Source: Podarcis cretensis (lineage: Eukaryota). Taken from it: 64,000 nucleotides of DNA. This document shows, piece by piece, positions 21,059-64,000 of this stretch (position 1 is the first letter of the stretch; the number at the start of each line of letters is the position of its first letter). Both the position numbers and the translations under genes were made by a program. The notes beneath the pieces are model-generated. The model was given only the letters and a program-made list of their open reading frames with translations, did not search any database and was not told where the DNA came from. The DNA is taken from NCBI GenBank assembly GCA_951804945.1, contig OX638165.1, forward strand, positions 13,950,001 to 14,014,000. Reading direction: 5' to 3'.

Positions 21059-22609
21059 AAGTGCATTTGGAGAGTGTACACCGGCCCAAGCTGGAAAGGG
21101 AGATGCACACACTGCTGGGTGTGCAGATGTGTGTACACACACACACACACATGCAAACAGCCGTTTTGTGCGTCCACAAAGTGGCGGGCGCCCGACTGTG
21201 TGTGCAAATCCGATTCAGGCAGGAGGGAAGGAAGCGATGTGTCGGAGGGCTTTGGAATTCCTTGAACACAAAGCAGGCTGAGCTTCAGGGCTGAGCAGAG
21301 GGATGGAAATCCCCGCCGGTGTGTAGTGAGCATGGGTGTTGGTTGTGTAGAAAGCAATGCCAGGGGGAGGCGGTGTGCACAGACCAGAGAGGGTGCATGC
21401 TTGAATGGCTAGATTGTGCAATGGAGAGCCTGTGTGCAGCTAAATTGTTTGGTGTATGTGTGCGCATAAACTGCTTTGAGCACATGGTGTTTGCAGGAAA
21501 TGTGGCGTGTTAATAAACTGACCATGACACTGTGTGTGTGTGTCCCAGTGTTAGAGCATCTGCCTTTCATGCCAAAGGTCCGTAGTTTAATTCCTGGCAC
21601 TTCCAAGTACAGCTGAAACCCTGGACAGCTGCTGCCAGTCAGTGTAGGTGATACTGAACTGGATGGGCCGATGTTCTGACTCTTTGTGAAGCAGCTTCCT
21701 CTGTGTATATGCGGGTGAGAGAGAGACAGTGAGTGAGTGTGCAAGTGTACCGTATATGTGCCACGAAGCACGGAGGCACGTGCAGTACTTCGCACGAGGG
21801 AGTTTTCGCTGGCGAGGAGCGTTCTTTGGGGGATGCTTGCATTACTTATTCTTATAATGATTAATTACTGTAGCCCCATCAATGTCAAACACACTTTACA
21901 TAGTTTCCCAGGAAAGAGAGAGGCAGAGGTCCCTGCCCTCAAGGAGACCACAGTGCAAATGCTTCCGGTGGGGGAAATCAGCATTCAGGCAATTTCTTAA
22001 TGGGAGCATTACGTTATTGGGGTGGGCGAGCTATTTGTGGAGCAGAATTCCTCGCTACTTTGGTAGGGGGAGGCTGAGAAGGGAGAGCTACTTCCTAAGG
22101 CCCTCCCCACTGCAAGATCTCATGGGAGATGTTGGGGGTCTAGAATGACAGGCTGCGCCAGGATGGAATGGGGAAGCAGTGAGAGGAAAAAGCAGAGAGG
22201 TTTAAAAAGGTGAGGCAGCAGTTGATGGGAAAGGCTTCTGCTTGTCAGAGCAACTGTCCAGATCGGGTGTGGAGACTTCTGTATGTCACTAAACTACAAC
22301 TCCCATCATCCCTTGCCATCAGCCATGCTGGCAGGGGCTGATGGGAGCTGTGGTTCAGCAACATCTGGAAGGCCAAAGGTTCCCCACACTTGAGCTACAT
22401 GGATAAACAGTCTGGCTGGTTATAAGGCAGGCTTCGCCAACCTGGTGCCCCTTCCAGATGTTCTGAGCTGCGACTACTGGCTGCGTTGGCTGGGGCTGAC
22501 GGGTGTTGCTTTCAAACAACAACATCTGGTTGGTGCCAGATCGGTGGAGATTGTCTTACAGATATCTGCCAGTGATAATCAGGGTATAAGGAGAAGCAAG
22601 AACAAAGTA

Positions 22610-25471: not shown

Positions 25472-28400
25472 TGTGTTGGAAGATGCGATTTTGGAAGAGG
25501 ATGGCTAATCTCTCCTTGGCACGGAACCTAGCGCCTTTGAATCTTTTTCCAAGTCCCTGCAGGGAAATGTGGCAGGGAGCTGTATTTTTCTTGATAACAC
25601 GGCTTTAATGGGGATTGGGGTGGGGTGGGGGTGGGGAGATGCATCAAGAAAGCTGGGGGGGGGGGGCGAGAAAGAGAAAGGAGGCTGATCCAGGATCTCC
25701 TCCTCCTGTTCCAGCAGCACATGAAGTGCTGGAAAGATCTGAGGGTGGGGGAGTTAACATGTTTGTCTCCCATCAGAAAGCCTTTTTGCTAAACCTGACC
25801 CAATTTATATCTACAGAGAGAGGATGTTTTTAAAAGGAAGAGGGGGAATAAGGAATTTAGTTAAGCGTTCCTTGGCTCTTAGTGGCATTCTCCTACCCCC
25901 ACACCCACAGTTTTTAACCACAAATGAAATTAGATGCTACTTGATTGTAAAATCACCATCAACATCAAACTGTAGAATTGACAGAAGGGGCCCCAGGGTC
26001 ATCTAGCCCAACCCCCTGCCGTTCATTATTATCATGAATGATCATGTAAAAGCAGGGTGAATATACCAAGTGAAAGGATTTAAACATAAACAGAGGGAGA
26101 AGGAGGTCATTAATTGACCGAAACCCACTTTCCACCAATTAATGACTACCTCTCAGTTTTCCCATGTGTAAAATTGGAATGAAATAGTGGGCAAGCTTCA
26201 CCGCTTTGTGAGGGCAGATGCAGCAAGGATTTCGTCAGCACGTACAGCGTGGGTGTACCCCACGGTAAAAAGAAAAGGTGAAATGACGGAAGGAAGGAAT
26301 ATTAATTAAGATATACCAGGGATGATGGCTAGAGCTGGCCAAGCAAGTAGCATGTAGGGCTAACTCATAAGTCCACAATTCCAGACAAGTGCACAACACA
26401 CAAGACACAGAATTTAGCAATCTAAGAATTATCAGTTTTCAAGGGTTTCTTTTTTCTTAAGACTCTAGTCCTTAAGGCTACGATAATCAGTCATAAAGAA
26501 TTTATTCGTTTATTGCATTTATATCCCACCATTCCTCCAAGAAGATCAAGGCTGTGTACGTGGTTCTCCCCTTCTGATCCCCACAACAACCTTGTGAGGT
26601 AGGCTGAGAGACGGTGACTGGCCCAAGGTCCCTCAGTGGGCTTCATGACCAAGGGGGCATCTGAATCCTGGTCTCTCTCAAGTCCTAATCCGACAGCCTA
26701 ACCACCACACCACACTGACTCTCAGTGTGAATAATGTCCGCTGGAACCTTTTAAATTAGAGGGGCACTCATTACAATTGCTAGCAATTCAGGAAACAGAG
26801 GTCTATTCCTTTCCCGTGATAAGCCGGCACTAGATAAGAATACGATGAAAATAAATCAGTAAATCTGACTAGAATCCCATTTCCCTCCTCCAAGGCAGAA
26901 TTTGTCAATTATTATTTAAGTGCCAAATGTATGCATGCAGCAAGCTATCACAACACTAAAATACATGACCAAAAACCCCAACAAACCATACCGGGATTTT
27001 AGTCCAGAGGATTGGCTACCTGCTTAAGTCGGGACAAAATGATGACACCTGTCTGGGGAGGGTGAGCAAAGGAGCAAAATGCCACAGGTGAGGGAAGCAG
27101 CTGTGAAGATTTCTGGCACAAAGCCTCTGCCACAGGCGTGGGGAGCCTTTGACCCTCCAGATGTTGCCAGACCACATGCTTGCTAGGACTGATGGGAGTT
27201 GTAGTTCATCAACATCACTCTAGATCATTAGCCAATCAGGAAACCTGGAGTACAGCCAATCAGAGCCTGAGGAAAAACTCCCAGGCTTCTCAGGGTGCCT
27301 CTGGTGATGCATTAATGTAATTTGAGCCTGTGGCTCTGCAGACTGCCAGCTATGGCTACTGGGAGTTGTAACAGCTGAAGGGCCACAGGTTCCTCATCCA
27401 TGGGCTTCGTCAGGTTTTGAATGTAAAGGAAAGCGCCCCCTGAGCATGTGCAGAGAGCTTTACTTCTTGGTGCTGAGTAACCCAAAGCCAGTTGCCTCGC
27501 CCATTATCTGGAGAAAGATGGGGGCGAGAAATACACGGAGAACGTCCAGCTGCCAAAGCGCGAGACTCTTAATCTTAGGGTCATGGGTTCAAACCCCTTG
27601 TTGGGCAAAATATTCCTGCATTACAGGGGGGTTGGGCTAGATGACCCTCATGGTCCCTTCTAACCCTATAATTCTATGATTGTATCTCAAAAGCTTGGTA
27701 GCCTTTGTCTGCTGTGGGGAAGACCAGTCAAGTTGGCGTTCCTGGCAAGTCCCCCTGGGGAGGGCATTCCACGACTGGTGTGCCAACTCCTAGAAGGCAT
27801 TCTCTGGAAGACTTCGCTACCCATGGCAGCCTTCCCTGTTTAATGCAGGGATGGAGAACCTGCAGTCCTCTCTATGTTGCCGGGATACCAGCCAGCAGGG
27901 CCAATGGCGGGAGTTTTCACCCAGTGTCAGATCTGGAGGGCCACAGATTCCACTGCCACTCTCAAAGGCTACATGCACACTGGGACCTGCAGTCAGTGGC
28001 AGACCCACATTTTTGGGGCCCTGAAGAATGAACTGCTATGGGGTCCCCTTCGCAACCGACAACAAGGTCCGGGTAATCTTAGTTAAAAGGGTTGTTCCAC
28101 AACAGTTCACTACAATTTTTTAAAATTAAAAAATAGCCACTACATTTCATATTTTGATTAAAATTGCTCTATTAGACTATTTCACATCTCAAAGTCACTT
28201 GTGTGAATTCAAGTTATTTGCGGGGTGTGTGTGAAAATTAGGGAAATGTTATTTACATTCATGATGCGTTATAAAATGATTGTGAGTTGTGCGATTCAAA
28301 TTGGGTCTACTGGACCCAATTTTTTAAAAAGCAATGCAGACTAAAGTCATTTCTGGGGGGCCCCCTTGTATTAGAGACCCTGAAATTTAAGCTTCATTAG

Positions 28401-28769: not shown

Positions 28770-28980
28770 TATATGGATCGTGTGGGGTGGCAGAGCTCAA
28801 TGAAACCTTAGACACCCCTGACAAAAGAAAGAAAACATGGGCGCCAACTTGCTGCATGCTCTTCTGAGCCCGGTTTTTTGAACCGGGAAGGGCAGGGTAT
28901 AAATAAATAAATATTATTGTTATATATTATTATCTCTCTCTCCCTCCCTCTCTCTTTCCCCCTGCAGTTCACCTTTCCCA

Positions 28981-30199
28981 ATGCCTCCCTCGCCTCTGGA
29001 AGAACGGATCGGCGTGCTGCAGCGACCCAAAACTTTGGCCTTGCGCCTCAACCACAGCTTTGCCAACGGGGGCACCCCAGGCGGTGGCGAGAAGCAGCCC
29101 CCGGCGGTCTCCAGAGCGCCTGGCCAGGCCGCCCCGGCTCCCGCGAAGGCGCCCTGCGACGAGGCCGCACGCCGGGGGACGCCGGGCGTCCTGCAGCCCA
29201 ACCACTCTCACACCATTGACATCAAGCTGACGGTGGGAGGCGTGCAGAGCCTGTCGCCTGAGAGGAACGTCTCCCTGCAGCTGGACCTCAAGCAGGCCGA
29301 GCCTAAACCGAAAGGCCTCGCTGGGCCCCAGCTGAAGGTCTTCTTGCCCCAGGCGAAGCTCAAGAAGCGCTGCTTCAAGGAGAACTCCAAACCGGCGGTG
29401 CTGGACACATCCACCAGCTCCTCCTGCCTCTCCAGCCCCGCCATGCACCCCCTCAAATGCGGATGCCGCGGCTGCTGGCGCCTCATGCGCTGCGAGGACG
29501 CCGGACCCAAGGGCGGCTTGCTCTCCCTGGGCTGCTTCTCCTGCCGCTCCAGCCTGCGCTCCCTCAGCTGCTCCAGCTGCAGCCCGCCGTCCGTCAAGAA
29601 GCTGGGGTGCCTGCCCTGCACCCCCTCCTCGGCCCTGCACTCCCTGGCCTGCCTGGCTTGCAACCCCTCGGTCAAGTCGGGCAGCTCCTCCTGTAGCTTC
29701 TGCAGCAGCGACCCCATCGTGGCCTACGACCCCCGGGCGGGCTCGTCCCCGGCCCCCAGCTGCGGGGACGACGATGACTACAGCGTCCGCACCATCTGGC
29801 CCGACGAGCTGGCCAAGAAAATGACACGGTCCCGGGCGCAACAGCAGCAGCAGCAGCAGCATGTCTCCCCGCTCATCCTGGACTGCCGCAACCTGATGGA
29901 ATACACCAAGAGCCAGCTTCAGGGCGCCATGCGCTTCGGAGCCGCCGACGCAGCGGGCCGGAGGCGGCTCCAGCAGGGGAAGATGGCCATGCTAGATTTC
30001 ATCTCCTCGCGGGGAGGCTGCGACGCAAGGGACTCCTCGCTGCAGCGTCTCTGGGCCAAGGAGCCCGGCGGCCGCGCCAGTCCGGAGCCTCTCCCCGCCA
30101 GCCCCCCCAAGCCCCGCAAAACGCAGCCCTCCCAGAATCTCCACCTGGTGCTGGATTTGCTCAACAAAGATGGCGGGCAGGAAGGGGTCGGCCGGAGAG
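28981..30199 (+). CDS. DUSP10/MKP5-like MAPK phosphatase, coding exon 1: N-terminal region, CxxC array, kinase-binding (rhodanese-like) domain
   Basis: Acceptor at 28967/28968. Starts MPPSPLEERI (DUSP10 starts MPPSPLDDRV); TIWPDELAKKMT...ILDCRNLMEYTKSQLQGA...RRRLQQGK KIM; donor G|GTGAGC at 30199/30200 (phase 1). High GC3. Confidence 0.92.
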
Positions 30200-30519
30200 G
30201 TGAGCTGGGGGTTCTAGGTGCCGACCGCTGTGGTGGCAGCAGAAATTGCATTGGTGTGTCAAAAGTTCTTTCTCCTGGGGCCACCACTTCCCTAGTTGCC
30301 CTGAGCCTTCTGCTGGTCCGAGGGGAATGCGTTCTGGGCTAACACAATGTCTCCCCGCTTTAAAGAACTCCTGCCTCCAGACAAGAGGTTGATTATTTCT
30401 GCAAGGCTGTCGCTTATCCATCAGCCCTGAGTTTCCCTCGGGTCCTTCTCAGGCTTCCTGAGGTTATATTTTTCCTTATTACATTTTGTTCCACATTGAA
30501 CTACCTGTTTCCCGGCTGG

Positions 30520-30609
30520 TAATAATAATAATAATAATTTATTATTTATAGGCCACCCATCTGACTGGGTTTCCCCAGCTACTCTGGGCGGCTCCCAACA
30601 GAATTAATG

Positions 30610-30645
<36 letters not shown>

Positions 30646-30985
30646 TAAAAAGCAATAAAACATCAGACATTAAAAACTTCCCTGAACAGGGCTGCCTTCA
30701 CATATCTTCTAAAAGTCAGATAGTTGTTTATTTCCTTGACATCCGATGGGAGGGTGTTCCACAGGGTGGGTGCCACTACTGAGAAGGCCCTCTGCCTGGT
30801 TCCCTGTAACCTCAATCTTGCAGGGAGGGAACCTCCAGAAGGCCCTCAGTGCTGGTCCTCAGTGTCTGGGCAGAACAATGGGGGTGGAGATGCTCCTTCA
30901 GGGCCAAGACCGTTTAGGGCTTTAAAGGTCAGCACCAACACTTTGAATCGTGCTCGGAAACAAACTGGGAGCCAATGTAGGATGT
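30520..30985 (-). mobile_element. L2-clade LINE 3' fragment
   Basis: LHWLPVCFRARFKVLVLTFKALNGLGP is a classic L2 ORF2 C-terminal motif; (TAA)n tail. Confidence 0.8.
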
Positions 30986-32736
30986 AGACTCCCCTTGAAA
31001 GCCACAGGGAGAAAGGAAGTTTGGAGGAGAACCATAGATGCTCCCTAGAGTTCATTGGGGGAGATATGGGAAATTAAACCACAAAACATTATCTTGATAG
31101 AATGAATACAGCAGGAAGACACAACAGGGCAGTTCTTTCCATGCATGTTTTCCCTATGCCAATTGGGTTAGGTTTAAGATTTGCACCACTCCACCATCTC
31201 TTTGGTGACCTCATCCCAGCTGCATGAGCTGATGGCAAGATGCGAAGGGGGGCTTCACACCCCCCCAGTCCCCCCCCCACCTCACTTTTAGCACCTGTTC
31301 AAAACCCCATTGAACCAGAATGAACTCTACCCAGCTGGTAGCATGACATCATTTCTTTGACCTTCTTTCACACTTGCCCCCTCCCTTCTCCCCAGCCCCT
31401 GCCAGCCCCCACCATGGAGGGTGGGGTGTCATTTTACATAGCAGATGTTTTAGGTCAGGAAGAAGAACAAGTCCCCTCCCTTTTCGCCCCCACCTTCCTC
31501 CCACAGAAAACTGCAAAGGGGAAGGGGGAAGCCACTCTCAAGTGGTTTGGTTAGCACCAATTTGGAGCATACGGAGTACCCTTATACGGAATTGGACCGC
31601 TGACCTATCTAGCTCAGGGGTGCCTGCTCTGACTGGCAGCAGCTCTTGGGGTTTCAGGCAGGGAGCTTTCCCATCCCTATCTAGAGATGTCACTGGGGGG
31701 GTTGAACCTGCATTTAAGCAGAGGGTCTCACACGACCTTTTTCAGGGGTTGTTTCTGTGAGGTGGGCACAGAAGAGATTCAGAAACTCACAACTTAGAAT
31801 ATTACTCTGCCACCAAATTCACCAGCTTTGGGTGTCACACAGAGCTCTTTTCCCGTGTTGTGCCTTTAGGTAATTTTATACATTGGACTTCAGCATCTGG
31901 CTGGGATGGGGGTGGCTGGAGAGGCTCTTTGGTGCCCCACTTGCCCACCAGTGGTGGCCAGTGGTCAGGGGTGATGGGAATTGTAGTGCAAAACATCTAG
32001 AGCAGGTGCAGCGGGCAAAGGGGGGGGGGAACCTTTGGCTCTCCAGATGCTGATGAACTACACATCCCATAAGTGCCAGCAAGGATAGCGTACGACCAGG
32101 GAAGATGTGAGCCGTAGCTCAACCACATCTGGAGGGCTAAAGGACCCCCACACCTGATCCAGAGCGCCTCACCCCCCCATTCACTTGCTTCAAAATTAGG
32201 GAGTGCCAGCCCTGCTGTGTTTCCAGCTCCCTGTCCCCAACACACCTTTTTCCGAGCAGGGCTCTGTGCCTACACCTCCATCCAAACCTCCCACCTTGGC
32301 AGCATGACTGGCAGGTCATTGGGAGGGCAGCTGCTTTGCAGGGGGAAAGTCCCTGGTTTCATCCACAGCATCTCCAGGTAAGGTTAGGGAGACCACGCCG
32401 CCCCAAAATCCTGGAGTGGTGCTGACTGTCAGTGCAGACAATACTGAGATAGGCAATTGTCCATCACAAGACTCCTTGAGGATCATTTGATGCCAACACT
32501 CCAACTAAATAAGGAAATGAGAGCAAAATGTTTTGCCTGTGCTCACATCCTTGGTTTCTAACTGCTCAGCCAAACCTACTGATCGATTAAAACTTCGCAG
32601 CCCTAATTAAAATTGAATTATTACAATTCATTTCTTTACTCACTTACTCAAAGCTTTTTATCCTGCCAGAAAAGGCTCCCAGATCAGCTTACAAATGTCA
32701 GTGGTAAAACAGTCCCTGCCCTCAGGCTTAATTTAA

Positions 32737-32744
32737 AGAAAGAG

Positions 32745-32808
<64 letters not shown>
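32737..32808. repeat. (GAAA)n/(GA)n microsatellite
   Basis: Directly visible. Confidence 0.95.
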
Positions 32809-32934
32809 GGGGGGGGCACACACAAAAGGAAAACAGATTGGGAGGGAGGAGGAAAAAATAAAACTCAAGCACTTTTTCTGCACAATGCTTCCACTCCAGG
32901 GACTCAACCCCTTTGCTTTGTGTTTTGACCACAG

Positions 32935-33234
32935 GCAGTCTGATTGGGCCAGATGTTGCGGACGGCCCAGATGACTTGGGGCCCCCACTCACCCCTGACC
33001 TGGAGAATGCTGAGCTGAGCCCCATTCTGCCCTTCCTGTTCCTGGGCAACGAACGAGATGCGCAGGACCTCGAACGGATGCTGAGCCTCAACGTGGGGCA
33101 CGTTCTCAACGTCACCACCCACCTGCCCCTGTACCACGCCGACAGCGGGCGCCTGCGCTACAAGCGCCTCCCCGCCACCGACAACAACCGCCAGGACCTG
33201 CGCCAATACTTCGAGGAAGCTTTTGAGTTCATTG
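32935..33234 (+). CDS. DUSP10-like, coding exon 2: first half of DSP catalytic domain
   Basis: ACAG|GC acceptor and ATTG|GTGAGG donor, phase 1-1. [21 protein letters not shown]...[10 protein letters not shown]...YKRLPATD (general-acid Asp)...[12 protein letters not shown]. Confidence 0.95.
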
Positions 33235-33266
33235 GTGAGGTCTAGTCCTGCGGCGAAATAAAGGGG

Positions 33267-33446
33267 AGGGTGTAGCTCAGTAGTAGAGCATCCGTCTTGT
33301 ATGCAGCAGGTCTCGGGTTCAATTCCTGGCATCTCCCTCTGGAATGGTCTTTTGTTTGAAACCCTGATGATTCAAAGCCAGCCAGGATAGACAATAGCTA
33401 GATGGATCAAGGGGTCTGACTCTGTACAGGGCAGCTTTCTATGTCC
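33267..33446 (+). mobile_element. tRNA(Ala)-like SINE (many copies: about 4607-4770, 18226-18402, 21540-21700, 36228-36412, 43474-43632, 43688-43830)
   Basis: GTAGCTCAGT.GTAGAGCAT...TGCATGCAGAAGGTCCC.GGTTCAAT.CCTGGCATCTCC head and shared GAAACCCTGGAGAGCTGCTGCCAGTC body. Confidence 0.7.
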
Positions 33447-33652
33447 CTCATTTCTATTTTCCTCCCAATCTGTTTCCCTTTCTAAAAAAAACTTTGCTGC
33501 CTGTTTGCCTGGGGCCTATTCTTAACTCGCCGTAGGCGAACAGGCAAGGAGCTGTGTGTGAAATGGAATTTAGTCCAGGAAGCATTTGTGCACAACCCTT
33601 TCTCAGGTTAGCGTTGACGCTGTTTTTCCCCTCCCCCCTTCCCTTACTCCAG

Positions 33653-33918
33653 AGGAGGCACACCAGAGCGGCAAAGGAGTCCTCATCCACTGCCAGGCCG
33701 GTGTCTCCCGCTCGGCCACCATCGTCATCGCCTACCTGATGAAGCACACTCTCATGACCATGGGCGACGCCTACAAGTATGTCAAAGGCCGAAGGCCCAT
33801 CATCTCGCCCAACCTCAACTTCATGGGGCAACTGCTGGAGTTCGAAGTGGACCTCAACGCCGGCGTCACACCCCGGATCCTCACCCCCAAGCTGGCCGGA
33901 GTGGAGACCGAAGTGTGA
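33653..33918 (+). CDS. DUSP10-like, last coding exon: active site and C-terminus
   Basis: CCAG|AG acceptor; [12 protein letters not shown] active site, [19 protein letters not shown], ends [16 protein letters not shown]-stop. Total CDS 1785 nt = 594 aa. Confidence 0.95.
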
Positions 33919-39310: not shown

Positions 39311-39735
39311 TCACTTCCTGGGGGCGGCAGAGGGGGACTGGCCCCTGCTCTCCCAGACTTCACGGATGGTGCGGCGGACCTCCCGCGGGAGGTGGAGGGT
39401 CTCGGAGTGGCACTGGAGGATGTGCTGCTTGACGGTGGCCAGGCAGATGCGGCGCAGAGGGTACTCGCACACCATGCAGACCAGGTGATTGGCCGCGGCG
39501 TCAAAATCCACGAGGAAGCGGGCGCGCCAGGTGGGGTTGAAGCTCTTGGCCAGGAGTTGGGCGTCCTCGCTGCCCGCTGCCGCCCGCTGCCGGCGGGGCT
39601 TGGCGTCGCAATCTTTGGCGTTGCTGCCGGGGGAGTTGGCCAGGGCGCGAGGGGCAGGGTCCCGTGGTGGGCAGAGCTGGCGGGGAGGAGGATCCGTGGA
39701 GTGGAGCCGAAGTAGAGACACAGAGCATTTGCGAT
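39311..39735 (-). CDS. SPINDOC: SPINDOC last coding exon, with a second SPIN-DOC-type zinc finger
   Basis: Pyrimidine tract plus AG (39736-39737), phase 1 matching the previous exon. WRARFLVDFD...LVCMVC...VKQHILQCH...IREVW; stop at 39311-39313. Confidence 0.8.
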
Positions 39736-41932
39736 CTGGGGAGGAAGAGGCGGCGAATTGAAACAACAGGCCGTTCGCTCAGTCCACCTATCCCAGAGTT
39801 GGAAGGGACAACGGGGGTCAACTGACCCAACTCTCCGCAATGCAGAAATGTTCTACCCAATGTGGGGCTCGAACCCACAACCCTGATATTCAAGGGTCTC
39901 GTGCTCTATCAACTGAGCTGCTCTCACAACTAAAAGTGAGCATTTAGACAGCAACGAAAGAGCTCAGCTGGATCAAGCCAAAGGCTGACCATCTAGCCCA
40001 GCCTCCCATTCTCATGGTGGCCAACCAGATGCCCATTATGGGAAGCTGATCACAGAATCAGAGTTGGAGGGGACCCTGGGAATCATCTAGTCTAACCCCC
40101 TGAAATGCATATGGGTATCGAACCTGCGACCCTGGGATCATCAGCACCATGCTCTAACCAATCAAGCTATCCAGGCTGCTAAGCAGGACTTGAGGACAAA
40201 AGTGCTCTCTCCAGCCACCCAGATAGATCAGTCGGCAGAGCACGAGACTTAATCTCAGGGTTGTGGGTTCCAGCCTCACACTGGGCAAAAAGATTCCTGC
40301 ACTGCAGGGGGTTGGACTAGATGACCCTCATGGTCCCTTCCAACTCTGTGATTCTGTGAATCCCCAGCAGCTGGTCCCCGGAGACATGTACTGCCTTCAT
40401 TTACTGCTTCCACTCTGGAAGTAAAGCAGAGCAGCTGTGGCTTGTAGTCATGAATAGCCTTAAGCATCATGAATTTGTGTAATCCTCTTTTATAGCCATC
40501 CAAGTTGGCGGGCAGTACCTACGCCTCAGAAATGCCCCTGGGAAGTCCCCAAGCATAGCAGAAAGCTCAGGGGGCGGGCAGGGCTGAGAATGGGGATATA
40601 TAAAGAGAAGAGATGTTGGTGTGCAAATCCTGCCTTGGGAGACGGAAGGAGTTCCAGTCCAGTTTTCAGCCGGGCTTCAGCCTTGGCTGAGCTTGGAGGG
40701 AATAAGCCAGTGATGTGAGGTTGCTCGTTTTGGTGACTTTTGATACACAGCCGGCAAGATTGGAGATAACATTCAGCCTCCCAATTAGCAGGGGGGAAAC
40801 CATAACACAGCAAGGACAAGAAACATCGCTTGTTTGTGCTAAAACAGGGGCGGTGAGTTTCTGGCCTGCAGGCCAATCCTGGCCAGGCAGGGGGTCCAGT
40901 TTGGCCAGCCCTACCTACCCGTCTGTCAGCTGCCGTCACTCAGGAAAATGGGTTCAATTCTGCCTTGGCTGTGGAAACAGGCACTTGCAGCCAGAGCGGG
41001 ATTTAGCACCCCTGGCAGTCAGCTGAAGAGTGGGTGGTGGGTGGGCCTAAATCCGACCCAGTTTTGCCCCTTGCGCCTGTTCCTTATTGGGAACAAGCAG
41101 CAAGACTTACCCACTGCTCTCTTCCTTGGGCCTGGCTTTGCTTCAGAGTCCTGGGGTGGTTCTGTAACAACAACATCGATAATACATTGTGGCCACCTGT
41201 AGGAACCCGTGCCATCAACATGCCCCCCAAATCCCAGAATAACAGAATTACGGAGTGGGAAGGAGCAGTGATCTGCAACATTCCAGGCAGAGGGCCGTCC
41301 CACCTCTCCTTAAGCCAACAGCTTCCAAGGAAGCCTGACTCCCTGCCATTTCCATCCCTTGGCTCTAGTTCTGCAGGTGGGGACGGGACTCAGATGTTGC
41401 TGGACTCAGTAACCCCTAGCCGTTGGCCGTGCTTGCAGGGGCTGATGGGAGTTGGAGTCTTCCAGACCTGCTTTAAGGGGTTAGAACATGGTGGCCAGTG
41501 TTCCGTTTTAAGGGTGGGGTGGGCAGCCTGTGGCCCTCCGGACATTGCTGGGAGCCCAACTTGCAACAGTCAAGGAGGGAGCTTTTCCCCCCAGCTTCCT
41601 GCCCCTGCCCTGCCCCTTCCACCACTGCCAGTTGCCAGGGTGGGAAAAGAGAAGTCGATGGGATGGGAGGCAGAGGGTGGGGAGAGGTCAGTACAAGTCC
41701 GAGCCTCCAGGACACCGACCCTCAAGCCTGACCGCGGCTCCGCCTCCACCTCCTCAGGGAGGCCATGTGACAGCCTGGCTGTGTGCATGTTGCATTTGAC
41801 AGGTAACGTGCCTCTGGTTTGGGCCCGGGCGGCAGTGGTAGCAATGCACACATGTTTTACCTGCTCCCCCCTTCCTTCTCCTTTCCCTCACGCAGGGAGA
41901 TTTTTAAGTATGACCGCCAAAGCACTAATCAC

Positions 41933-42052
41933 CTGGTTGAGTCCGGCAGTACAGTTTCAAGGCAAAGCCAGCTGGAAAAGTGCCGTCCGTGAAGATACGG
42001 ATTTCGGCAGGTGCCGAGCCTGGGACCCCACATTCCGAGAGCCATTCCTTTC
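41933..42052 (-). CDS. SPINDOC: SPINDOC exon encoding the Spindlin1-docking peptide
   Basis: APAEIRIFTDGTFPAGFALKLYCRTQ matches human APAEVRHFTDGSFPAGFVLQLFSHTQ; AG/GT ends, 120 nt, phase 1-1. Confidence 0.92.
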
Positions 42053-43921
42053 CTGGGAAGAAAAGAGGCGGCGAGGAATTAAGCCAAGGATTGGGCAACT
42101 TTTCAAGCCCGAAGGCTGCATTCCCTTCTGGGCAGCCTTCTGGGGGCCGTGTGGAAGTGGCACTGGTTGTGGAAGAGGCCAGAGGTGAAAGAGGGCAAAG
42201 CATATTGGCTCTTTGTCAAATAGGATGGCTTACACACACGCTCACACTCCCCACACGCCTGCCCCACTTTCTCTCCTCCATCCAGACAGGCTAGAGGCAT
42301 AATCTGAATTCAAGGACATATTCCGGCCAGACAAAAACACTCAAGGAGGGTGCAGAAGCAAGGCCATGGAGGCAAGTGGCCTGGGAAGAGTCCCGAATCT
42401 GCCACCACTGAAAGTGACTACTATAAACTCAAAGTTAGACCTATTTAAAGTGATGGGCATGGCTCCACTAGGTTCACTAGTTTAAATGGGTCTACTCTGA
42501 GGAAGAAACTTAAGTTGGATGTAACCCCCACAATCCTATTCTGTCCCCTCCCAAAACAACAGCACAAAAAAATATGTACTCTGTACCAAGCAGAGCCAAA
42601 TTCTGCGATCTGTGTAAGTCAGGCACGTCAAACTACTCTGCACCCCCCCACCCACATTCTCACCCCACCTATTTTGCAAATTATTCTGACTGTGTTGGGG
42701 AAGGGGCACACAGCGACTTTTGCAAGAATGAAGGATGGTTTTGTTCAACCCACCAAATTCAGGTTTTCAGTATTACCAAAACCTTGATGGCATGCTGTCA
42801 AGCCCCTCTTTAAAGGTTAGAAACTTGACCTTCAAAGGAGCCAAGGAGGAAGGCAGATAAGATCCTACGAATGTTTGGCGCCTCTGCGGAGCGCTAGCCT
42901 GTGGGTGGACACACAAGGAGGCAGCTAGGCACGCAAAGGGAAGGAACGGTGGCGGCGACTGAACGGAAGACGCTTCCATTGCTTTGGGGAGGGAAAAACC
43001 TGCCCCCACTCTAAAAAGCAGCCTTACAGCAATGTTGCTAACCTGTGGTCTTGCTGGGATGCTTGCTCGTGTCTTTGATGGCGCTCAAGCTGTGCCACCT
43101 CTGCTGGCCTTGTGATCGCCGTTCAGGGTCTAAGCATACATAAAGGAAAAACAGTTCCACGGGTTAGGTCCATGGTCTTCAACTGGTGGCTGGAGTCAAG
43201 TCATATCCCACTCCAACGCTAAAGTGGAAGGCAGTGCCTGTGGCCATCAGGCTTCGCTCATCCTGCACACTTTGCAAAAGAAGGGATTTCCGGATGAGGC
43301 TCTTATCCCTACAAGAAGAGCCTACAGCCATAAAGACTCCTCCTTCTACCCAACAGCCAGAGGTAGAGAGATGCCCTCTTTGGCACCTGGGCAAGAGAAG
43401 GCTAAAGCCAGACACATGTGTTAAAAACAAACAAACATTGGAATGGGGTGTCGTCCTGCTGGTTGAGGGATTAAGGGCCATAGCTTGGTGCTTTGCACAC
43501 AGAAGGTTCCAGGTTCAATCCCTGGCATCTCCAAGTAGGGCTGAAAAAACTAATTGAAACCCTGGAGAGCTGCTGCTAGTCAGTGTAGACAGCACTAAGT
43601 TAGATCCCTTGGCGTAAGGAAGCTTCCTATTTTCCAGTTTAAATTCAGAACCATGAGGACTAGAATCTCATTTCGTTTTTTAAGGGAGGGGCCACAGTTC
43701 ACATGTTTCCTGCAGAAGGACCCAGGTTCAGCTTCCTGGAGGCATCTCCAGGTAGGGCTGCAGAGCGCCCCCTGCCTGAAATCCCTGCCGGTCCGTGTCG
43801 GCAGTGTTAGGCCAGACGGCAGCTCCCTATTTTTCTTACGAGTGGGTCCTGGGTCTGAGAACGATGACGATGACCCGTCTAAGCGACGACCACCACCACC
43901 ACCTCCGGCCCCAGCACTCAC

Positions 43922-44026
43922 CGCAGCGCGCTCTCAGGTGCCCACGCTTCCGACTCGCCGGCTGCCGCTCCTCCGAATCGAGGAGCACCTCTATCTCAGC
44001 CGGCTGCTTGCTCTTGCCGGGGTCGC
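43922..44026 (-). CDS. SPINDOC: SPINDOC internal exon (missed by the ORF track)
   Basis: CCAG|GC...TGCG|GTGAGT, 105 nt, phase 1-1. Encodes DPGKSKQPAEIEVLLDSEERQPASRKRGHLRARC (human PAEIVVLLDSED). Confidence 0.88.
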
Positions 44027-45562
44027 CTGGCAGGGGATAGTTTCAGAAAGGGGAATCAAAAGCGGCACACAGCACTGCATGTTTGCTCCACGGCAAAGAG
44101 TGGAAATGGGCAGCAGCGGGCAGAGGACTTGGCCTCCCAAGGATCTCATCTTCCGTTTAGGGGGAGGGAGAAAGGAAAGAGACAAGTTTCTAGCCCTTAT
44201 GGATGTGAATTGGTACTCCAAGGCAATGCCTGGAGGAATCTTGGTATCCAGGGTGGAGCTGAGAGAGAGAGAGGCTAAGTCAGTAGGCAATTGTCTAGGG
44301 CAGCCTTTGCATACCCAGAGCCCTCTGGGTGTTCTCAGCTACAACTCCCATCAGCCAACATGGCCAGGATGGCTGGGGCTGATGAGAGTTGTAGTTCCAA
44401 ACACCCAGAAGGTGCTTTCGCCAGCTGTTTGCTTCTCCCAGTGACTAACAGGCACAAACATAGGCAGAGTGATTGCATTTCTATACATTCTTCATGCATA
44501 AATACACAACTTCCTGGTTGCGTTGTCCAACCTAAAGGCCAGTATCTTCCAACTTCTGTAGTCATTAAATGCCGCTAAAACCCACAATTCAAGTGCTATT
44601 TCACTGTCAGTCCTCAGCACCATCAGGCCTCCTCTTGATCCCTACACTCAACTTTTGCCCTGGGACTGCAAAGATGGAGGGCAGCATGTCTGGACCTCTG
44701 CCACCACCCGGGGGTCTAAGGAAGGCAGCGCCCCCTGCCTTCTAGGAGGAACATCACAGCAAGGAGGAGACCAGCCTGACCCAGTCCAGTGGCCAGAGAA
44801 GGAGCAGCTGCAGAGAGCTGGCTTCCCCTCTCCGTGCCAGGGAGAACATTTATGAAACACTATGTAAGCGAGAACAAGTCCACGAGTTTGCTTTTTCCCT
44901 CCCAATCCTTTTTTCTTTTGTGCTGTGTCTTTTTTCAAGTCTGTAAACCTGTGGGCAGGCTCCGCCTTATCACTGGTTGTCTGCAAACTGCCCTGGCTTT
45001 TTCAGCTAAAGAGCAGAGAAAAACACTTCCACTGAAATGTTTGCCAACATCCTGTTAGTGTAGTCAAACAATGACTTGAAATGATTCTTGAAAGATTTTG
45101 CCCTAGCAACAAGTCTGCCCCTTATCAACAGGTTTCTTTATAAGGCAAGGTCTGGATCAGAGAGAGAGAGAGAGAGAGAGAGAGTTGGAGGCTGTTGCTC
45201 TGGCCAGATGGCTGAAGAGCACAGTGAGACAGAATGATTATCTGAACGTAGTTTTACTTTACTTTACTAGACTAGTGGTTCTACAAGATGTAATGTTAAT
45301 TTGACAATAAATGCATTCAGAAGAACCAAAATGTGAAGAAATGGATTCTGGAAGACTTTCTGGGCGACTCTGCTGACCGGAAAAGGAACCCCAAAGGATG
45401 GCAAACTGCACTGACACCCCCAGCCCCTTCTCCAGGAGGCACAGGGGAAATGGAAGAGGCAGACACAGAGGGCCACTTTATCTCAAAACCCAAAACCTTT
45501 TCCAGACACAACTGGAGATGGCACCATTTAATACAACACTGATCTGTGTTGGTGTGTGTTAC

Positions 45563-45847
45563 CTGCAGGGGAAGGTTGTGGCTCTGGCTCAGGAAGCACC
45601 ACCCCTTCGCTCCAGGCTTCCAGGATGTTGCGCTTCTCTTCGAAGCTGAAGTCCAAGGAGTGGGCGTGATGCTCCAGAATGTGTTTGCGGGCGGCCACAG
45701 GCCCCGAGGCACTCAGGTTGCCGCCGCACACCATGCACACTGGCTGCCTGCCCCCCGAGCTCTCGGCAATCAGGTACTCCTGACTCCAGGAGCTGCCTGC
45801 CTCTTCTGGGCCAACCTCGGCCACCGGGATTACAACCAGCCGCTCTC
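45563..45847 (-). CDS. SPINDOC: SPINDOC exon encoding the SPIN-DOC zinc finger
   Basis: SWSQEYLI...CMVCG...ARKHILEHHAHSLDFSFEEKRNILEAWSEGV matches human SWEQEFLV...CMVCG...ARSHILEQHPHTLDLSPSEKSNILEAWSEGV; 285 nt, phase 1-1. Confidence 0.93.
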
Positions 45848-46613
45848 CTGGGGGTGAGAAAGGGGGCACGTTGGGATGGAGGAGGGGTCTGATGCCAGCC
45901 TTGGAGACAGTTCCCATCTCCCTGATTCCTTGTGCGCGCTCTGCCCCCTTCCTTTCTCTAACAGACGCTGCCGGACTACAAGTCCCATCACCCCCCCCCA
46001 TGATCATGCTGGCTGAGACTGATGGGAGTTGGAGTCAGGGCAGGCAGAGAGAGCCCTTGGCTGCCCTATGGATGGCACTGGGAATGAACCTCCCATCAGC
46101 CACAGCCAGTGTGGCCTACCAGCAGGAATGGCGGTGGTTTTTGCCTAGAGAGTAGCCACAGGACCTCTACTCCTCTCTTCTAGGTCAGCCTCATTGGCTC
46201 AAGCTTTTTCCAACAAACAGCTCTTATTATTGTTTCACGGGCTAACTCAAGGCTGGAGGTCCTTTTCCATCCTAAGAACCCAATAAAAGCCCTGCAGGTT
46301 CAGGCCTGCAGCCCCTCCAGCACCTAATTCATGTAGTGGCCAGCAACAGACAGTGGAGGGAGAACATGGCCATTGAGGCTGGTAGCCATTGATCGCCTTG
46401 TCCTCCGTGAATTTGCCTAATCCTCTTTTAGGTTGGTGGACACCACCCCATCTTGCTGGAGGGAATCTCCCAGTTTAGCTATGTGCTGTGGGAAGAAGCA
46501 TTTCCTTTTGCATGTCCTCAAGCATCGGACTTTGTTGGGCATCCCTGAGTTCTAGGATGATACGAGGGGAGGGACTTTCCCTGTCCTGCGCCCTGGAGGG
46601 GCACGTTCCCCAC

Positions 46614-46770
46614 CTCTGTCCACGGGATCTGCGTGGGGCCCATCCAGCCTGACTGGGGGGCAGCTGGGGAGCAGATGCCCTGCGGCCACTTTCTCTTTCT
46701 CCTTCTCTGTTTTGCACTTCAAAGAGACCTTGAGGTAGTCCAAGAGGGGAGCTTCTGCCTTCAGTGCCAT
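46614..46770 (-). CDS. SPINDOC: SPINDOC first coding exon (exon begins at 46806)
   Basis: MALKAEAPLLDYLKVSLKC versus human MALKAEGAALDCFEVTLKC. Acceptor at 46807-46808, donor AG|GTGGGG in phase 1. Total CDS 1092 nt = 363 aa. Confidence 0.85.
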
Positions 46771-46925
46771 GAGTGTTTCGGTGGGGCTGGCACAACAAAA
46801 GCCCACCTGTAGAAAAAGAAGCAGCACCGTTCAGGTTGCAGAGGGGGTGGATGGAGATGGGAAAGAAACACTTCCAAGGTGACAACCTCAGTTCCCACAC
46901 CTCTTTTTCTCCTGGCTAGGAAAAA

Positions 46926-57624: not shown

Positions 57625-58567
<943 letters not shown>

Positions 58568-60293
58568 TAAATTCGCGGGTTTGTGGATCATCTTAATCGT
58601 AGCCACGGATAGCCTTATCCGTTCATTTTTTAAATCATTTTTTATTGATTTTCCAATAAAGACAGCCAATCAACATGCCCACATCATAATCTAATTAAAA
58701 ACAAAAAACTAAAATAAAAAAGGTCAAATTGTGATCCACATTTTAATTATTAATTTTTCCATGCTCCCCATAGTCTGGACCTCTGAAGCATATCTCCAAA
58801 TCTTCAGTCTTGCCTCCTCTCGTTGTTTTCATATTTTCCACATCCCGATCTTAACGCTTTAAAGTTCTCCATCCCTGGCTCTGCGATTCTCAGTCATGTC
58901 AAAAATCATATATTTATGATTTATGATGCCTTATCTTCTGTTTGTTGGTCTAATCCCACCCCCCTTTTTTAATATTGTCAGAAATGGTATATTTTTCTTC
59001 CATAGTGGTAATTTTTCTTCAATGACTATATTTTTTGGCCATAAAAATTATTACTTGAACAGATGAAAAAACTTTCAAAAAAAAACCCTGGCAACTAAAT
59101 TTTTATATAGGTTTCATTCAAAAAGAAAGAGAGCTATGTTTATAGTGTTTGTTGGACTTCAGATATGAGGCACCATTTTTTCATTAAATCTCAAAAAATA
59201 TTCCAAAACATTTATCATCATATCCTCCCCCCCAAAAAAATTCAACATAGATTTCTTCTTGACTTCCCGCCCCCCCCTTTCCTGATGTTTGTTTTCCACT
59301 TCTTTTTCTTAGCTGTTTTACAGTACATGTGTTTTTATTAACTAAACTTTGCTATCCTTAGTTCTTTCAGTAATCCACTGCTTATATTTCAATTCCTGCC
59401 CGCAGCTTTATGTATGGATGAAACTTTGATAGATAATCCTGACAACTAAATTGCTTAACACAGTGAGAGGGTTGGACTTGCACTGTGGGGACCCATGCAA
59501 CTTTTTTTACAGTTGGATATTCCTTTCACCCTTCCTTTTTATAAAAAGAATACGTTAAGTGGCCATCCCAAGCAGATAAGGAGGTTTTATTTTTATCTTT
59601 TTGTGAAGATTTTTAATTTAATTTTATAGTGTATATAAAAGTGAACAGATGAAAATTAAAAGATGAAAAGCAAAATGATAAAACAGGCATGTAGAATAAG
59701 TGCAGTTGTACACGGGTTAAAAAACACAAAGCCCAAGTAAATATTGTTGTGATCTGATTATCATAGTTCCAGATTTGCCAAGGTGGTGACGGGGGTTGTC
59801 TTGAAAATGACGGTTCCCTTGTATATGTCATAAAGGAATGCCAAATCATATGTCTGGAGGTTCTAGGCTTGTCAAAATCTCAAATTATGTGTGATTTTTT
59901 TCCATTATAGCTGTATTCCAGAGGGGATGGTACCAAGTGTTTAGCGTAATATTTTGGGCTTTCCCCCCCCCTGAGTTTCAATTACTATTCAAGCTGCCAC
60001 AATCATATATATAAGACCAATTCTTTTTTTTCTTTTCTCAATTAATTTATTATTAATGTTGCAATACATATATAAAATCTTTACATATTGATACATATAC
60101 ATTATATTTGTAAATTTACATTTCACATGTGAAATATAAGACCAATTCTTCTGACATTGTAGATATCAGTAACATTAATTTTGGACAGCAGACAATAGTT
60201 TATTTAATAATGTTCATCATCTCTGATGAAATTAGATTCCGAAAAGCAGACAAGAAGGTTCACCTGCTCTCCACCTGCCTTGCTTCTGTACAG

Positions 60294-60683
60294 GTGGAGA
60301 ATTTCCGCTGAGTAGCAGCCGCAGGAGGCGCCGTGGCCCAGGACCCCTCTCCTCTCGTGGGGGGCGACGACCCTCCGGCCTGGCCCTGAAAGCCTCCCCG
60401 GGAGTGGAAGAGCAGAACTTGGAGCGCTACCTGAAAGAGTCCCTGCAGAGCTGGTTCCAGTCTGAGTTCCTGATGGACTATGACCCTCAGGGCAACCGCC
60501 TCTTCTGCATGATGTGTGGCTCCTCACTGCCCAGCCTCAACTTGGACGACATCAAGAGGCACGTCATGGATGCCCACCCCAGCTCGCTTGGCTTCAGCCC
60601 CGCCGAGAAAGCCAGCATCCTGGAGACTTGGAACGCCCGGGCCGTGGTCCCGCCAGCTGAGGGCACAGGAGAGACACCAGTGG
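60294..60683 (+). CDS. ZFTA: ZFTA exon 3, zinc finger 2
   Basis: LERYLKESLQSWFQSEFLMDYDPQGNRLFCMMCG..LPSLNLDDIKRHV...HP; ACAG|GT acceptor and GG|GTGAGG donor, 390 nt, phase 1-1. Confidence 0.93.
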
Positions 60684-62430
60684 GTGAGGCAGGAAGTGGG
60701 CAGAAGGCGGGAGGGGAGGGCGGAAGCAGAGCGCCGGAATTAGAACGATATTTCAGCAGGCCTGCAAGTGACATGATCATGCAGGTGGCGGGAAAGTAGA
60801 TAAATACAGTCGTGCCTTGGTTGACAAACGCCTTGCGACTTAAACATTTTGGCTCCCGAACGCTGCAAACCTGGAAGTGAGTGCTCCGGTTTGCGAACGT
60901 TCTTTGGAACCCAAATGTCCAACGCGGCTTCCTGCAGCCAATTGGAAGCTGCACCTTGGTTTCCAAACATTTTGAAAGTCGAACGGGCTTCCAGAACAGA
61001 TTCCATTTGACTTCCGAGGTACCACTGTTAATGGAGAATGCGGAGGGTGAAGAAACTGGTGGAAGAGGCTGTCTGAGACCTTGCGAAGGCCACATGGGAT
61101 TTTGCGTGACCTTCGCAGAGCCCAGTAAGCAAGGCAGAGGGCTTGGAAATCTCTTTCTGCACCAGTTTTTCCTGCTGTGGAAATAGTTTTTAAGCCGTCA
61201 GCCTTGCTTCCCGGGCTGCTGGAACCCTCAGGAAGGGTGTGGACTGCCCCAGAGCATTCCTGAGGCCCCTTCCCGGAGTCCAGGAAGGTAGGATTGGTTG
61301 TACAGAGGGGAGGTTCCAGGTATCTTCCTGACTTTGCATGATTCTGTATCTGCTCATGAATCCCTGGAGCGTAAGCCCCACATAAGTTTTGGGCCTGCTG
61401 TGTTGCTTCTCTGAATCAGGCACCGTACTTAAAATCGAGGAACTCCTGTCTCTAGCTTCTTCTTGAAGGAAATCCTGGGATACATGCTAGTGACCAAGGA
61501 TAAGGGAACCTGGCGTTGTCCGTATGGTACAGAACTCCAGTTCCCAGCAGCCACAGCCAATGGTCGGGGGGAGGGCCAAACAGCAGGTGCAAACAGGAAC
61601 CTCATTCCTCCGAAACCTTGTGTAACCAGAAAGTGAGGCATCCAGCAGTCTCTTGTGGGAGGGAGAGCGGAACCAAGAGTTGCGCAAGTACAAAACAGAT
61701 AAGTGAGTGCGGACTGAGCATGCTCAGTGGGCACAGAATCCTGGTGAGTGGCAAAACCCGGAAAATCAAAGATAGGCGTGCGGAATGGAGTGTCCTCAAA
61801 ACGGGGATGGCTTGCGAGTAGGAAACAAACTGCCTTGAACCTTTGGTGCATCTAGCTCAGTATTGTCTTCGCTATCTGTACTATACATTTGAAAGCAGTA
61901 TCATGCCACTTTAAATAGCCATGGCTCCCCACCCCCCCACCCCAAATCCTGGGAGTTATAGTTTGCTAAAGGTACTGAGAGTTATTGAGTGAATCCCCTT
62001 GTCACAGAGCTACACTTTCTGTCTCTTCCCGGGGAATTCTGCGAATTGTAGCACTGTGAGAGGAATAAGGGTCTCCTAACAAATCTTAGCACCCTTAACG
62101 TGTCACTGTTCCCAGAACTACAAAGGGGTGATCGTTACTGCGGATGAATTGGATCAGAGCAGAGGATGCAAAGTGAGGCACATATAGAGGGCCAGACAAG
62201 AACCTTGGCAGTACTATGCATGGGTTCTGCTTTATGAATGAGAAACAGCGAACATTCACCTGTCCAAACATGAAGAATGGCTACCCAAACATCGCTAGAC
62301 ACATTGCAGATTCAGATACTTGAACAGAGAGCATCCTCTACTTCCTTGCTTGCCGTTTGCTGGCTGGTGGAGCAATGAAGTGAGAGAGTGAGAGATCAGA
62401 CAAATCAGAGCATTTTTTCTGTTTTTCGGT

Positions 62431-62709
62431 GGGAGGTCAAAATTCTAAATTAGAATTTTTCAAAAATTAGGGGGGAAAAATCAAAATTGGAAATTTCCTC
62501 ACAGGACTCAATGGAAATCATTGACTCCTTATGCAAACGCTTGGCTAACGATCAATTTGTAGGGAACACTGGGAGGTCAAAATTCAAAATTAGAATTTTT
62601 CAAAAATTAGGAACAAATTTCAAAGTTAGAAATTTCCCCACAGGACTCAATGGAAATCATTGACTCCTTATGCAAATGCTTGGCTAATGATCGATTTGCA
62701 GGGAACACT
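62431..62709. repeat. two-copy tandem duplication, unit about 140 bp
   Basis: GGGAGGTCAAAATTC...AGGGAACACT starts at 62431 and again at 62571. Confidence 0.9.
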
Positions 62710-62794
62710 GTGTGTTCGGTAAGCAGGACCTTTGTGTAATTAAATCCGTCCTCTTGTCCCCCCGCTTTCCCACTCCTTCCTGGATCCACCCCAG

Positions 62795-63220
62795 AGGCAG
62801 AGTCTGAGCCGTCCCCTCAGGACCTGACCAAGAAGGAGGTGGACCCTCCCACGTCCCCAGACCAGCCTGCTGGCGAGGACGGCTCTGAGGAGGCCGGCGC
62901 TTGGGACTCGGAAGAGAGTGGCCTTCCTGCCCCGGCCCGGGGGAGGGACCACCGCCGCTACTTCCAGGAGCACTGGCGGGTGGAGTACTTGATGGACTAC
63001 AACGGGTCGCGCCACGGCCTGGTGTGCATGGTGTGCGGGAGCTCCTTGGCCACGCTCAAGATGAGCACCATCAAGAGGCACATTCAGCAGAAGCACCCGG
63101 ACTCCACCCAGCTGAGCCACCACGTCAAGGCCCTCATCGTGGAGGAGTGGAACCAGAAGGTGGCCCGCCTGGCGGACGCGGAAGACTCCTTGCCCGAAAC
63201 AGACGGCGAGGCAGACAAAG
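62795..63220 (+). CDS. ZFTA: ZFTA exon 4, zinc finger 3 (gene continues beyond the window)
   Basis: GRDHRRYFQEHWRVEYLMDYN...[25 protein letters not shown]; CCAG|AG acceptor and AAG|GTAAGG donor, 426 nt, phase 1-1. Confidence 0.93.
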
Positions 63221-63276
63221 GTAAGGGGCAGGCGGGGTTTGAACCCCCCCCCGGTGCATTTTGCTCCTGGTATATT

Positions 63277-63320
<44 letters not shown>

Positions 63321-64000
63321 CTTTATTATTATTATTCAGCCAGCTAGCCTTGGTGATTATCTAATGCTTATTAGATGAATTTCCCCTAAATTGATTTCTG
63401 AACTTTGGATTTTATTGTTAATTCACGTTTTTATACTGTATTTTATGCTGCTTTTACAATTGTTTTAAATTTGTTGTTAGGCGCCTGAGCCCAGTTTTTG
63501 AACCAGGAAGGGCAGGGTATAAATAAATTATTATTATTATTTATTGGTATTGTACAACCTGTGTACAATGAAATTAAACGAGCCTCCCGCCCCCAAACAC
63601 TCAATCTCTTATTGAACAACACACCACCTGGTGCAGGCCTCATTGTGACTACTTGGAGATTTCAGGCTGGAGAATTGAAAGAGATCACAAGGGTCATCTA
63701 GTGCTCCCCCTGCAATGCAGTAATCCTCCCCCCCCCCCGCATTGTGGGGCTCACACCCACGACCTTGAGATTAAGAGCTTGATGCTCTGCTGACTGAGCT
63801 ATCCCAGCTGCTCCAAGATGTGCCAGGGGAAAGCATTCAAAATGTGCTTGTGCTCCTGCAGGCTGAAGCTGTACAGTTCCGCCTCTGGATCCTACTCCCC
63901 GATTTCTGCCTTGTTTTTCGGCAAACTAAACCCTCCAGATGTTTTGGGACTACAACTCCCATCATCCCTAGCTAACAGGACCAGTGGTCAGGGATGATGG

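Follow-up and report, generated by a model that had tools for sequence, protein, structure and literature searches.

A second, probably ancient DUSP10-type phosphatase gene beside SPINDOC in the lizard Podarcis cretensis

The stretch of the Podarcis cretensis genome analysed here comprises 64,000 nucleotides (contig OX638165.1 of assembly GCA_951804945.1, positions 13,950,001 to 14,014,000 of the forward strand; hereafter the window, with positions counted from its first letter). At 28981-33918 on the plus strand it contains a complete gene for a 594-residue protein phosphatase of the type of DUSP10, also termed MKP5, a mitogen-activated protein kinase (MAPK) phosphatase (MKP). Very probably, vertebrates had a second ancient gene of the DUSP10/MKP5 type, of which this is the lacertid orthologue: an early duplicate that lies in a SPINDOC/ZFTA neighbourhood, likely encodes an active MKP of the JNK/p38 type and has been lost in mammals. 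We regard it as a new and so far uncharacterised addition to a well-known family of enzymes; its docking region is modified.

The three coding exons of the window gene were searched separately, and the public protein P0001 from Podarcis muralis (97% identical in exon 1 and 100% in exons 2 and 3) was used as the full-length stand-in. When exon 1 was used as query in a word-indexed search of proteins, 75 matches were returned, with identities of 97% in lacertids, 59-79% in other squamates, 63-66% in turtles, 48-51% in lungfish, caecilians and salamanders, and 33-40% in sharks and rays. Bichir, paddlefish and teleosts were also matched, and most of the matches are annotated as 'dual specificity protein phosphatase 10-like' or 'si:dkey-175m17.7'. 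A second search, with the C-terminal 306 residues of P0001 as query, ranked the same taxa first and the canonical DUSP10 proteins next, at 54-62% identity. P. muralis has both P0001 and a separate canonical DUSP10 of 481 residues (P0094), and both copies are also present in 12 further species (Pogona, Varanus, Latimeria, Protopterus, Rhinatrema, Hyla, Mixophyes, Ascaphus, Cetorhinus, Chiloscyllium, Heptranchias and Narcine). Exons 1, 2 and 3 of the window gene are 34%, 78% and 88.5% identical, respectively, to P0094, which bears out the strong divergence of the N-terminal half that a first-pass annotation of the window had pointed to. These comparisons identify the window gene as distinct from canonical DUSP10.

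For the phylogeny, outgroups from amphioxus, Ptychodera, two molluscs and a copepod were obtained by a HMMER search of 1.84 billion cluster representatives together with name look-ups. The main tree was computed in IQ-TREE (LG+C20+F+G4 with posterior mean site frequencies, PMSF) from 69 proteins and 457 columns and was rooted on the invertebrates, with support expressed as ultrafast bootstrap/SH-like approximate likelihood-ratio test (SH-aLRT). The outgroup (6 rows) is supported at 100/99. All vertebrates (63 rows) are monophyletic at 100/99 with respect to amphioxus, hemichordate, mollusc and copepod, and they divide into a canonical DUSP10 clade of 22 rows (100/98) and a 'DUSP10-like', or L, clade of 41 rows (100/100) to which the window gene belongs. 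The canonical clade is made up of chimaera, sharks, rays, coelacanth, lungfish, amphibians, birds, mammals, squamates and one teleost. The L clade is made up of sharks, rays, bichir, sturgeon/paddlefish, teleosts (si:dkey-175m17.7), coelacanth, lungfish, caecilians, salamander, frogs, turtles and squamates. Both daughter clades therefore hold chondrichthyans and osteichthyans, which is the timing expected of a paralogue retained from whole-genome duplication (an ohnologue), and the branching inside each roughly matches the species tree. The stem of the L clade has a length of 0.44, and paths within it are about twice as long as canonical ones, pointing to an evolutionary rate about twice that of canonical DUSP10. 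Whether the tree is rooted as above or as the catalytic-domain columns would have it (see below), the canonical clade takes in one gene from sharks and one from bony vertebrates and leaves a second gene of each group outside, and this pattern places the duplication before crown gnathostomes and after the amphioxus split. Cyclostomes are not represented in the tree, a name look-up of ten mid-ranking representatives having given only invertebrates and teleost fragments.

An orthologue of human DUSP10 would be expected inside the canonical clade and as the sole such gene of its species, and the window gene fits neither description. The proposal that it is the only DUSP10 of its genome, translocated and fast-evolving, is contradicted by P. 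muralis, whose protein is 97-100% identical and which carries both genes, and by the canonical clade, which leaves the window protein out at 100/98 (with exon 1 identity of just 34%); it is ruled out for practical purposes. Scarcely any more credence can be given to a recent squamate-specific duplicate or retrocopy, for which nothing speaks beyond the N-terminal divergence: the gene has orthologues in turtles, amphibians, lungfish, ray-finned fishes and sharks, so that a squamate-only origin is excluded by the span of the L clade, and it is interrupted by two phase-1 introns with GT...AG borders, the feature that had already been held to rule out a retrocopy. A translocated orthologue and a squamate-only duplicate were the outcomes that the first-pass annotation had set against its own proposal of a non-canonical second DUSP10, and neither was found. 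The retained ancient paralogue that it envisaged is recovered as a clade of its own, ranging from sharks to squamates and standing outside canonical DUSP10.

The duplication most probably arose in the early vertebrate whole-genome duplications, because its timing and the location of the gene beside SPINDOC and ZFTA fit such an origin. We take human DUSP10 to lie near MARK1 at 1q41 and human SPINDOC and ZFTA to flank MARK2 at 11q13; 1q41 and 11q13 are a classic paralogon pair. An ancient paralogue could also have originated in a small-scale (segmental or tandem) duplication followed by relocation, and in keeping with this, paralogon-scale synteny appears nowhere in the present results and the tree says no more about the date of the event than that it falls after the amphioxus split and before crown gnathostomes. 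We nevertheless consider a small-scale event unlikely, since the timing agrees with the period of the first and second rounds of vertebrate genome duplication (1R/2R) and since the gene adjoins SPINDOC and ZFTA, in line with the assumed paralogon of MARK2 at 11q13 and MARK1 at 1q41.

The first-pass gene model, a 594-residue, three-coding-exon gene with phase-1 introns, an MPPSPL start, an active site and a C-terminal end of DUSP10 type, was found in all its parts. The coding exons (Table 1) keep an intact frame of 1785 nucleotides, equivalent to 594 codons and a stop, and the two introns between them are of phase 1. Exon 1 contains the MPPSPL start, the N-terminal region, a module of CxxC repeats, the acidic DDDDYSVRTIWP motif, a truncated rhodanese/CH2 domain and the kinase-interaction motif (KIM). 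Exon 2 encodes a linker and the first half of the dual-specificity phosphatase (DSP) catalytic domain, including the general-acid aspartate in RLPATDNN, and exon 3 encodes the second half of that domain with the HCQAGVSRS active site (33688-33714), the DAYKYVKG... pocket segment and the C-terminal tail. Public gene models of lacertids split at identical junctions (exon 1, residues 1-406; exon 2, 408-506; exon 3, 508-594), and the 'DUSP10-like' proteins of P. muralis, Zootoca, P. raffonei and P. lilfordi are 96-98.5% identical to the window gene in exon 1 and 99-100% in exons 2 and 3. A (GCA)8/poly-Gln run is located in exon 1 at 29838-29861, just before the kinase-binding remnant, and its length varies among lacertids (7 Gln in the window and 8 in P. 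muralis P0001).

An AG acceptor at 28970-28971, preceded by a polypyrimidine tract, lies 10 nucleotides 5' of the ATG, and together with a match further upstream to the N-terminal extension of the Podarcis 'isoform X1' models (Table 1) it argues that the phosphatase gene has an upstream exon. The upstream match is split over two frames, with the break near 27000, and a 5' untranslated (5'UTR) exon is therefore more likely than a coding one in the P. cretensis window. The long 'isoform X1' is probably non-coding in the P. cretensis genome and may be an annotation artefact. With regard to expression, full-length newt orthologues of 578 residues are encoded on Logan contigs of only 1.9 kb, which implies spliced transcripts in this relative. 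Over more than 400 million years, dozens of species have preserved both the reading frame and the catalytic residues.

The catalytic domain is of DUSP10 grade. The Pfam DSPc domain is recognised on exon 2 (E 4e-7) and exon 3 (E 8e-27), and both the HCxxGxxRS signature (HCQAGVSRS) and the general-acid Asp (RLPATD) are present, the former being unaltered in 41 of the 41 sampled L proteins. When compared with solved structures, the domain matches human MKP5 (2OUD) with an E value of 6e-90; the best non-DUSP10 chain has 4e-38 and the next-best family, DUSP6/9/7, about 1e-35 to 4e-38, the domain being nearer to DUSP10 than to any other DUSP. In MKP5 the catalytic residues are D377, C408 and R414, and the allosteric/MAPK-binding site includes Y435, N448 and M452 (bioRxiv 10.1101/2024.09.05.611520). 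In an alignment to human MKP5 the equivalents of all of these are identical in the window protein, and the residues of the alpha4-alpha5 pocket are unchanged. The conserved catalytic Cys, Arg and Asp and the DUSP10-grade DSP domain support catalytic competence.

The docking region is modified. The segment that aligns with the kinase-binding domain (KBD) of MKP5 has a Pro-rich stretch in place of strand beta3 (IIVYDENT) and lacks the PLVLKGGLSSF... strand and helix that close the MKP5 domain, a truncation common to the whole L clade, and Pfam recognises no Rhodanese domain on exon 1. Squamates, turtles, lungfish, salamander and ray-finned fishes retain the basic cluster of the KIM, RRRLQQGK; variants differing in a single residue occur in snakes, an amphisbaenian, caecilians and bichir. 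L proteins have five to seven CxxC motifs between MHPLKCGCRGCW and SCSFCSSDPIV, compared with none in canonical tetrapod DUSP10; this module is conserved from sharks (partly) to squamates and deleted in frogs. The docking region is evolutionarily labile and the catalytic domain is not.

We propose that the L protein is most likely an active MAPK phosphatase aimed at JNK and p38, the substrates being those suggested by its conserved residues. The truncated rhodanese domain would no longer function as a folded KBD, RRRLQQGK would act as a linear docking motif alongside the pocket of the catalytic domain, and the CxxC module might serve regulation or localisation in a new way, for instance by binding metal, sensing redox state or being lipidated. 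MAPK-phosphatase models are built on the ten mammalian MKPs, and it is conceivable, as a tentative extension of this scheme, that non-mammalian vertebrates have an eleventh active MKP in which a disordered segment with a linear KIM and a CxxC module (zinc, redox or palmitoylation) provides a JNK/p38 control lost in mammals, birds and crocodilians. The conserved gene could also have ceased to be a MAPK phosphatase of the MKP5 type and have other substrates or a scaffold role, being recruited via its Cys-rich module. The clade-wide truncation of the KBD, the decay of the KIM in sharks and its deletion in frogs alongside a catalytic domain that stays intact, and the long stem branch and doubled rate all lend themselves to this explanation, which we nonetheless judge rather improbable in view of a KIM identical to that of MKP5 in most bony vertebrates and of the unchanged alpha4-alpha5 pocket through which MKP5 binds JNK and p38.

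Several observations count against the interpretation of the gene as an active JNK/p38-type MKP derived from an early genome duplication. The protein does not have a complete rhodanese/CH2 KBD, two core strands being missing, and AlphaFold models of the full-length protein (41-row paralogue alignment; mean predicted local distance difference test score, pLDDT, 45.8) and of the kinase-binding segment (79-row alignment; pLDDT 60.9, no strands) are too poor to judge the fold. The KIM is diverged in sharks and rays (P0030-P0037; e.g. GRSRAEQGQ) and deleted in frogs, so that MAPK targeting is not assured. In a tree of DSP domains (168 columns), an analysis that the first-pass annotation had suggested, the canonical clade (100/100) again excludes the window gene, and the outgroup joins inside a weak L grade (48-84), L not being recovered as a clade from these columns; an approximately unbiased (AU) test on the same columns does not reject L monophyly (delta lnL 1.05, p 0.25). 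The whole-genome-duplication origin depends on human map positions that we have assumed, the two-copy state was seen in P. muralis rather than in the P. cretensis assembly, and the RNA support comes from a newt rather than from the lizard itself.

No mammalian, bird or crocodilian member was found in the two protein searches (with exon 1 and with the C-terminal 306 residues of P0001). In the C-terminal search the slot in which archosaurs and mammals would be expected, between turtles (~480 bits) and amphibians (~445 bits), is empty, and a turtle cluster of 33 sequences has only turtles among the 15 members listed. Loss in mammals is supported, and loss in birds and crocodilians is probable, both as judged from annotated proteomes rather than genomes; bird assemblies often miss GC-rich regions. 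The first-pass claim that the gene is absent from human accordingly holds at the level of protein databases, in which mammals have no member, and not at that of a genome search. In the history that we favour, a single ancestral DUSP10 would have duplicated after the amphioxus split and before the divergence of sharks and bony vertebrates, and the L copy would have been kept by cartilaginous and ray-finned fishes, coelacanth, lungfish, amphibians, turtles and squamates and lost in mammals, apparently also in birds and crocodilians.

The nearest known system is DUSP10/MKP5 itself (human protein of 482 residues; PDB entries 2OUD, 1ZZW and 6MC1 for the catalytic domain and 2OUC and 3TG1 for the KBD). 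The window protein has in common with it the MPPSPL N-terminus, the RRRLQQGK motif, the C-terminal tail and a DSP domain of about 78-88% identity in which neither the active site nor the alpha4-alpha5 pocket differs in its residues, and presumably also the gene layout, in which a long first coding exon precedes two short ones. Unlike DUSP10/MKP5, it belongs to a separate clade that predates the split of sharks and bony vertebrates, is only ~34% identical in its N-terminal half, evolves at ~2x the rate and is encoded in a SPINDOC/ZFTA neighbourhood; its rhodanese KBD lacks beta3, the last strand and the helix, and in place of the bare CGC...SCC of MKP5 the window protein carries an inserted module of six CxxC motifs. 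The other JNK/p38-selective MKPs DUSP16/MKP7 and DUSP8 share the MKP class, the DSP domain and a KIM, but are far more distant (PDB 4YR8 and 4JMK, E about 1e-29 to 1e-30, versus 6e-90 for DUSP10).

The teleost si:dkey-175m17.7 proteins and the NCBI entries named 'dual specificity protein phosphatase 10-like' are orthologues of the window gene by their position in the L clade (100/100), with no characterisation in the literature searched. That search (dkey-175m17.7, dusp10 paralogue names, DUSP10 ohnolog / mammalian loss) found no paper naming or studying the gene, in accord with the earlier description of it as essentially uncharacterised, although public predictions exist in well over 100 species under the name 'DUSP10-like' or si:dkey-175m17.7. 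The orthologues vary in length around the 594 residues of the window protein. Those of teleosts (P0085, P0087, P0090 and P0122) have ~900 residues with large low-complexity N-terminal expansions, one being auto-named 'hornerin-like', and those of frogs (P0072-P0075; branch 0.78) have 410-450 residues, the CxxC module and the KIM both being deleted. Orthologues mislabelled plain 'DUSP10' occur in Zootoca, Pogona, Chelonia, Polypterus and some teleosts, and several teleost 'DUSP10' entries of 505-520 residues belong to the paralogue clade.

Beyond the phosphatase gene, two further genes were recognised in the window (Table 1). A protein-atlas comparison failed to separate SPINDOC from ZFTA for the nearer of them, and the docking peptide in the PDB decided for SPINDOC. 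This gene is on the minus strand with its stop codon facing that of the phosphatase gene ~5.4 kb away, the tail-to-tail arrangement that had been claimed for the pair. The plus-strand gene further downstream fits ZFTA and probably continues beyond the end of the window. On the other side, the open frames of positions 1-26900 contain no recognisable gene except a fragment of a long interspersed element (LINE), and MARK2 was not seen there; the LINE fragment, an open frame at 996-1478 on the minus strand, has a translation (WTIKKADHQRIDAFELWCWRRLLRVPWT) similar to the C-terminal portion of a LINE reverse transcriptase and is a repeat fragment, not a gene. The head of a tRNA-derived short interspersed element (SINE), GGGTTCAATCCCTGGCATCTCC, is present in three copies with at most one mismatch (0 expected by chance), in intron 2 of the phosphatase gene (33255-33336), in its 3' flank (36230-36294) and in a SPINDOC intron (43511-43532). 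Runs of (GAAAG/CTTTC)n at 32700-32800 and 21000-21100, which give 'KERKKERKK' or 'FLSFFLSF' when translated in open frames, are non-coding simple-repeat DNA.

Table 1. Features of the phosphatase gene and of its neighbours in the 64,000-nucleotide window
Feature	Position	Strand	Details
Candidate upstream 5' exon	26935..27085	+	tblastn with the 55-residue N-terminal extension of Podarcis 'isoform X1' models (P0309)
Coding exon 1	28981..30199	+	1219 nt = 406 codons + 1 nt; ATG at 28981; donor GTGAGC at 30200
Cys-rich module, six CxxC motifs	29458..29703	+	Paralogue-specific; alignment of L clade
MKP5 KBD remnant	29782..30180	+	Aligns with residues 9-128 of 158 of human MKP5 KBD chain; 3TG1_B E 1.9e-21, 2OUC_A E 1.3e-20
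KIM RRRLQQGK	29959..29982	+	Identical to canonical MKP5 motif
Intron 1	30200..32934	+	Phase 1, GT...AG
Coding exon 2	32935..33234	+	300 nt; CACAG acceptor, GTGAGG donor
Intron 2	33235..33652	+	Phase 1, GT...AG; holds tRNA-derived SINE
Coding exon 3	33653..33918	+	266 nt; TGA stop
SPINDOC	39314..46830	-	Spin-doc zinc fingers (Pfam) and SPIN1-docking peptide (PDB)
SPINDOC zinc finger 2, C-terminal	39314-39778	-	Pfam PF18658, E 1.5e-20
SPINDOC SPIN1-docking exon	41928-42215	-	Peptide APAEIRIFTDGTFPAGFALKLYCRTQ matches human SPINDOC docking peptide; 7CNA_B E 5.4e-7, also 7E9M_B
SPINDOC LLDSE exon	43839-44042	-	
SPINDOC zinc finger 1	45531-46034	-	Pfam PF18658, E 5.5e-18
SPINDOC start exon	~46.7 kb	-	Reads MALKAE
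ZFTA-type gene	57878..63378	+	At least 3 Spin-doc zinc-finger exons, E 1e-26 to 7e-31

Early vertebrate duplicates that were lost in mammals are common, and for this reason the gene is moderately interesting rather than surprising. It would provide a clean case of such a duplicate with independent losses in mammals and probably in archosaurs, and the database names of the several orthologues called plain 'DUSP10' need correction. The combination of a truncated KBD with a retained docking motif would be a natural experiment on the recognition of kinases by MKPs. If zebrafish, Xenopus relatives, axolotl, turtles and lizards do possess a conserved additional enzyme of MKP5 type, the paralogue may buffer the effects of DUSP10 knock-outs or MKP5 inhibitors in these animals or may be hit as well, the allosteric pocket of the MKP5 inhibitors being identical in the window protein.

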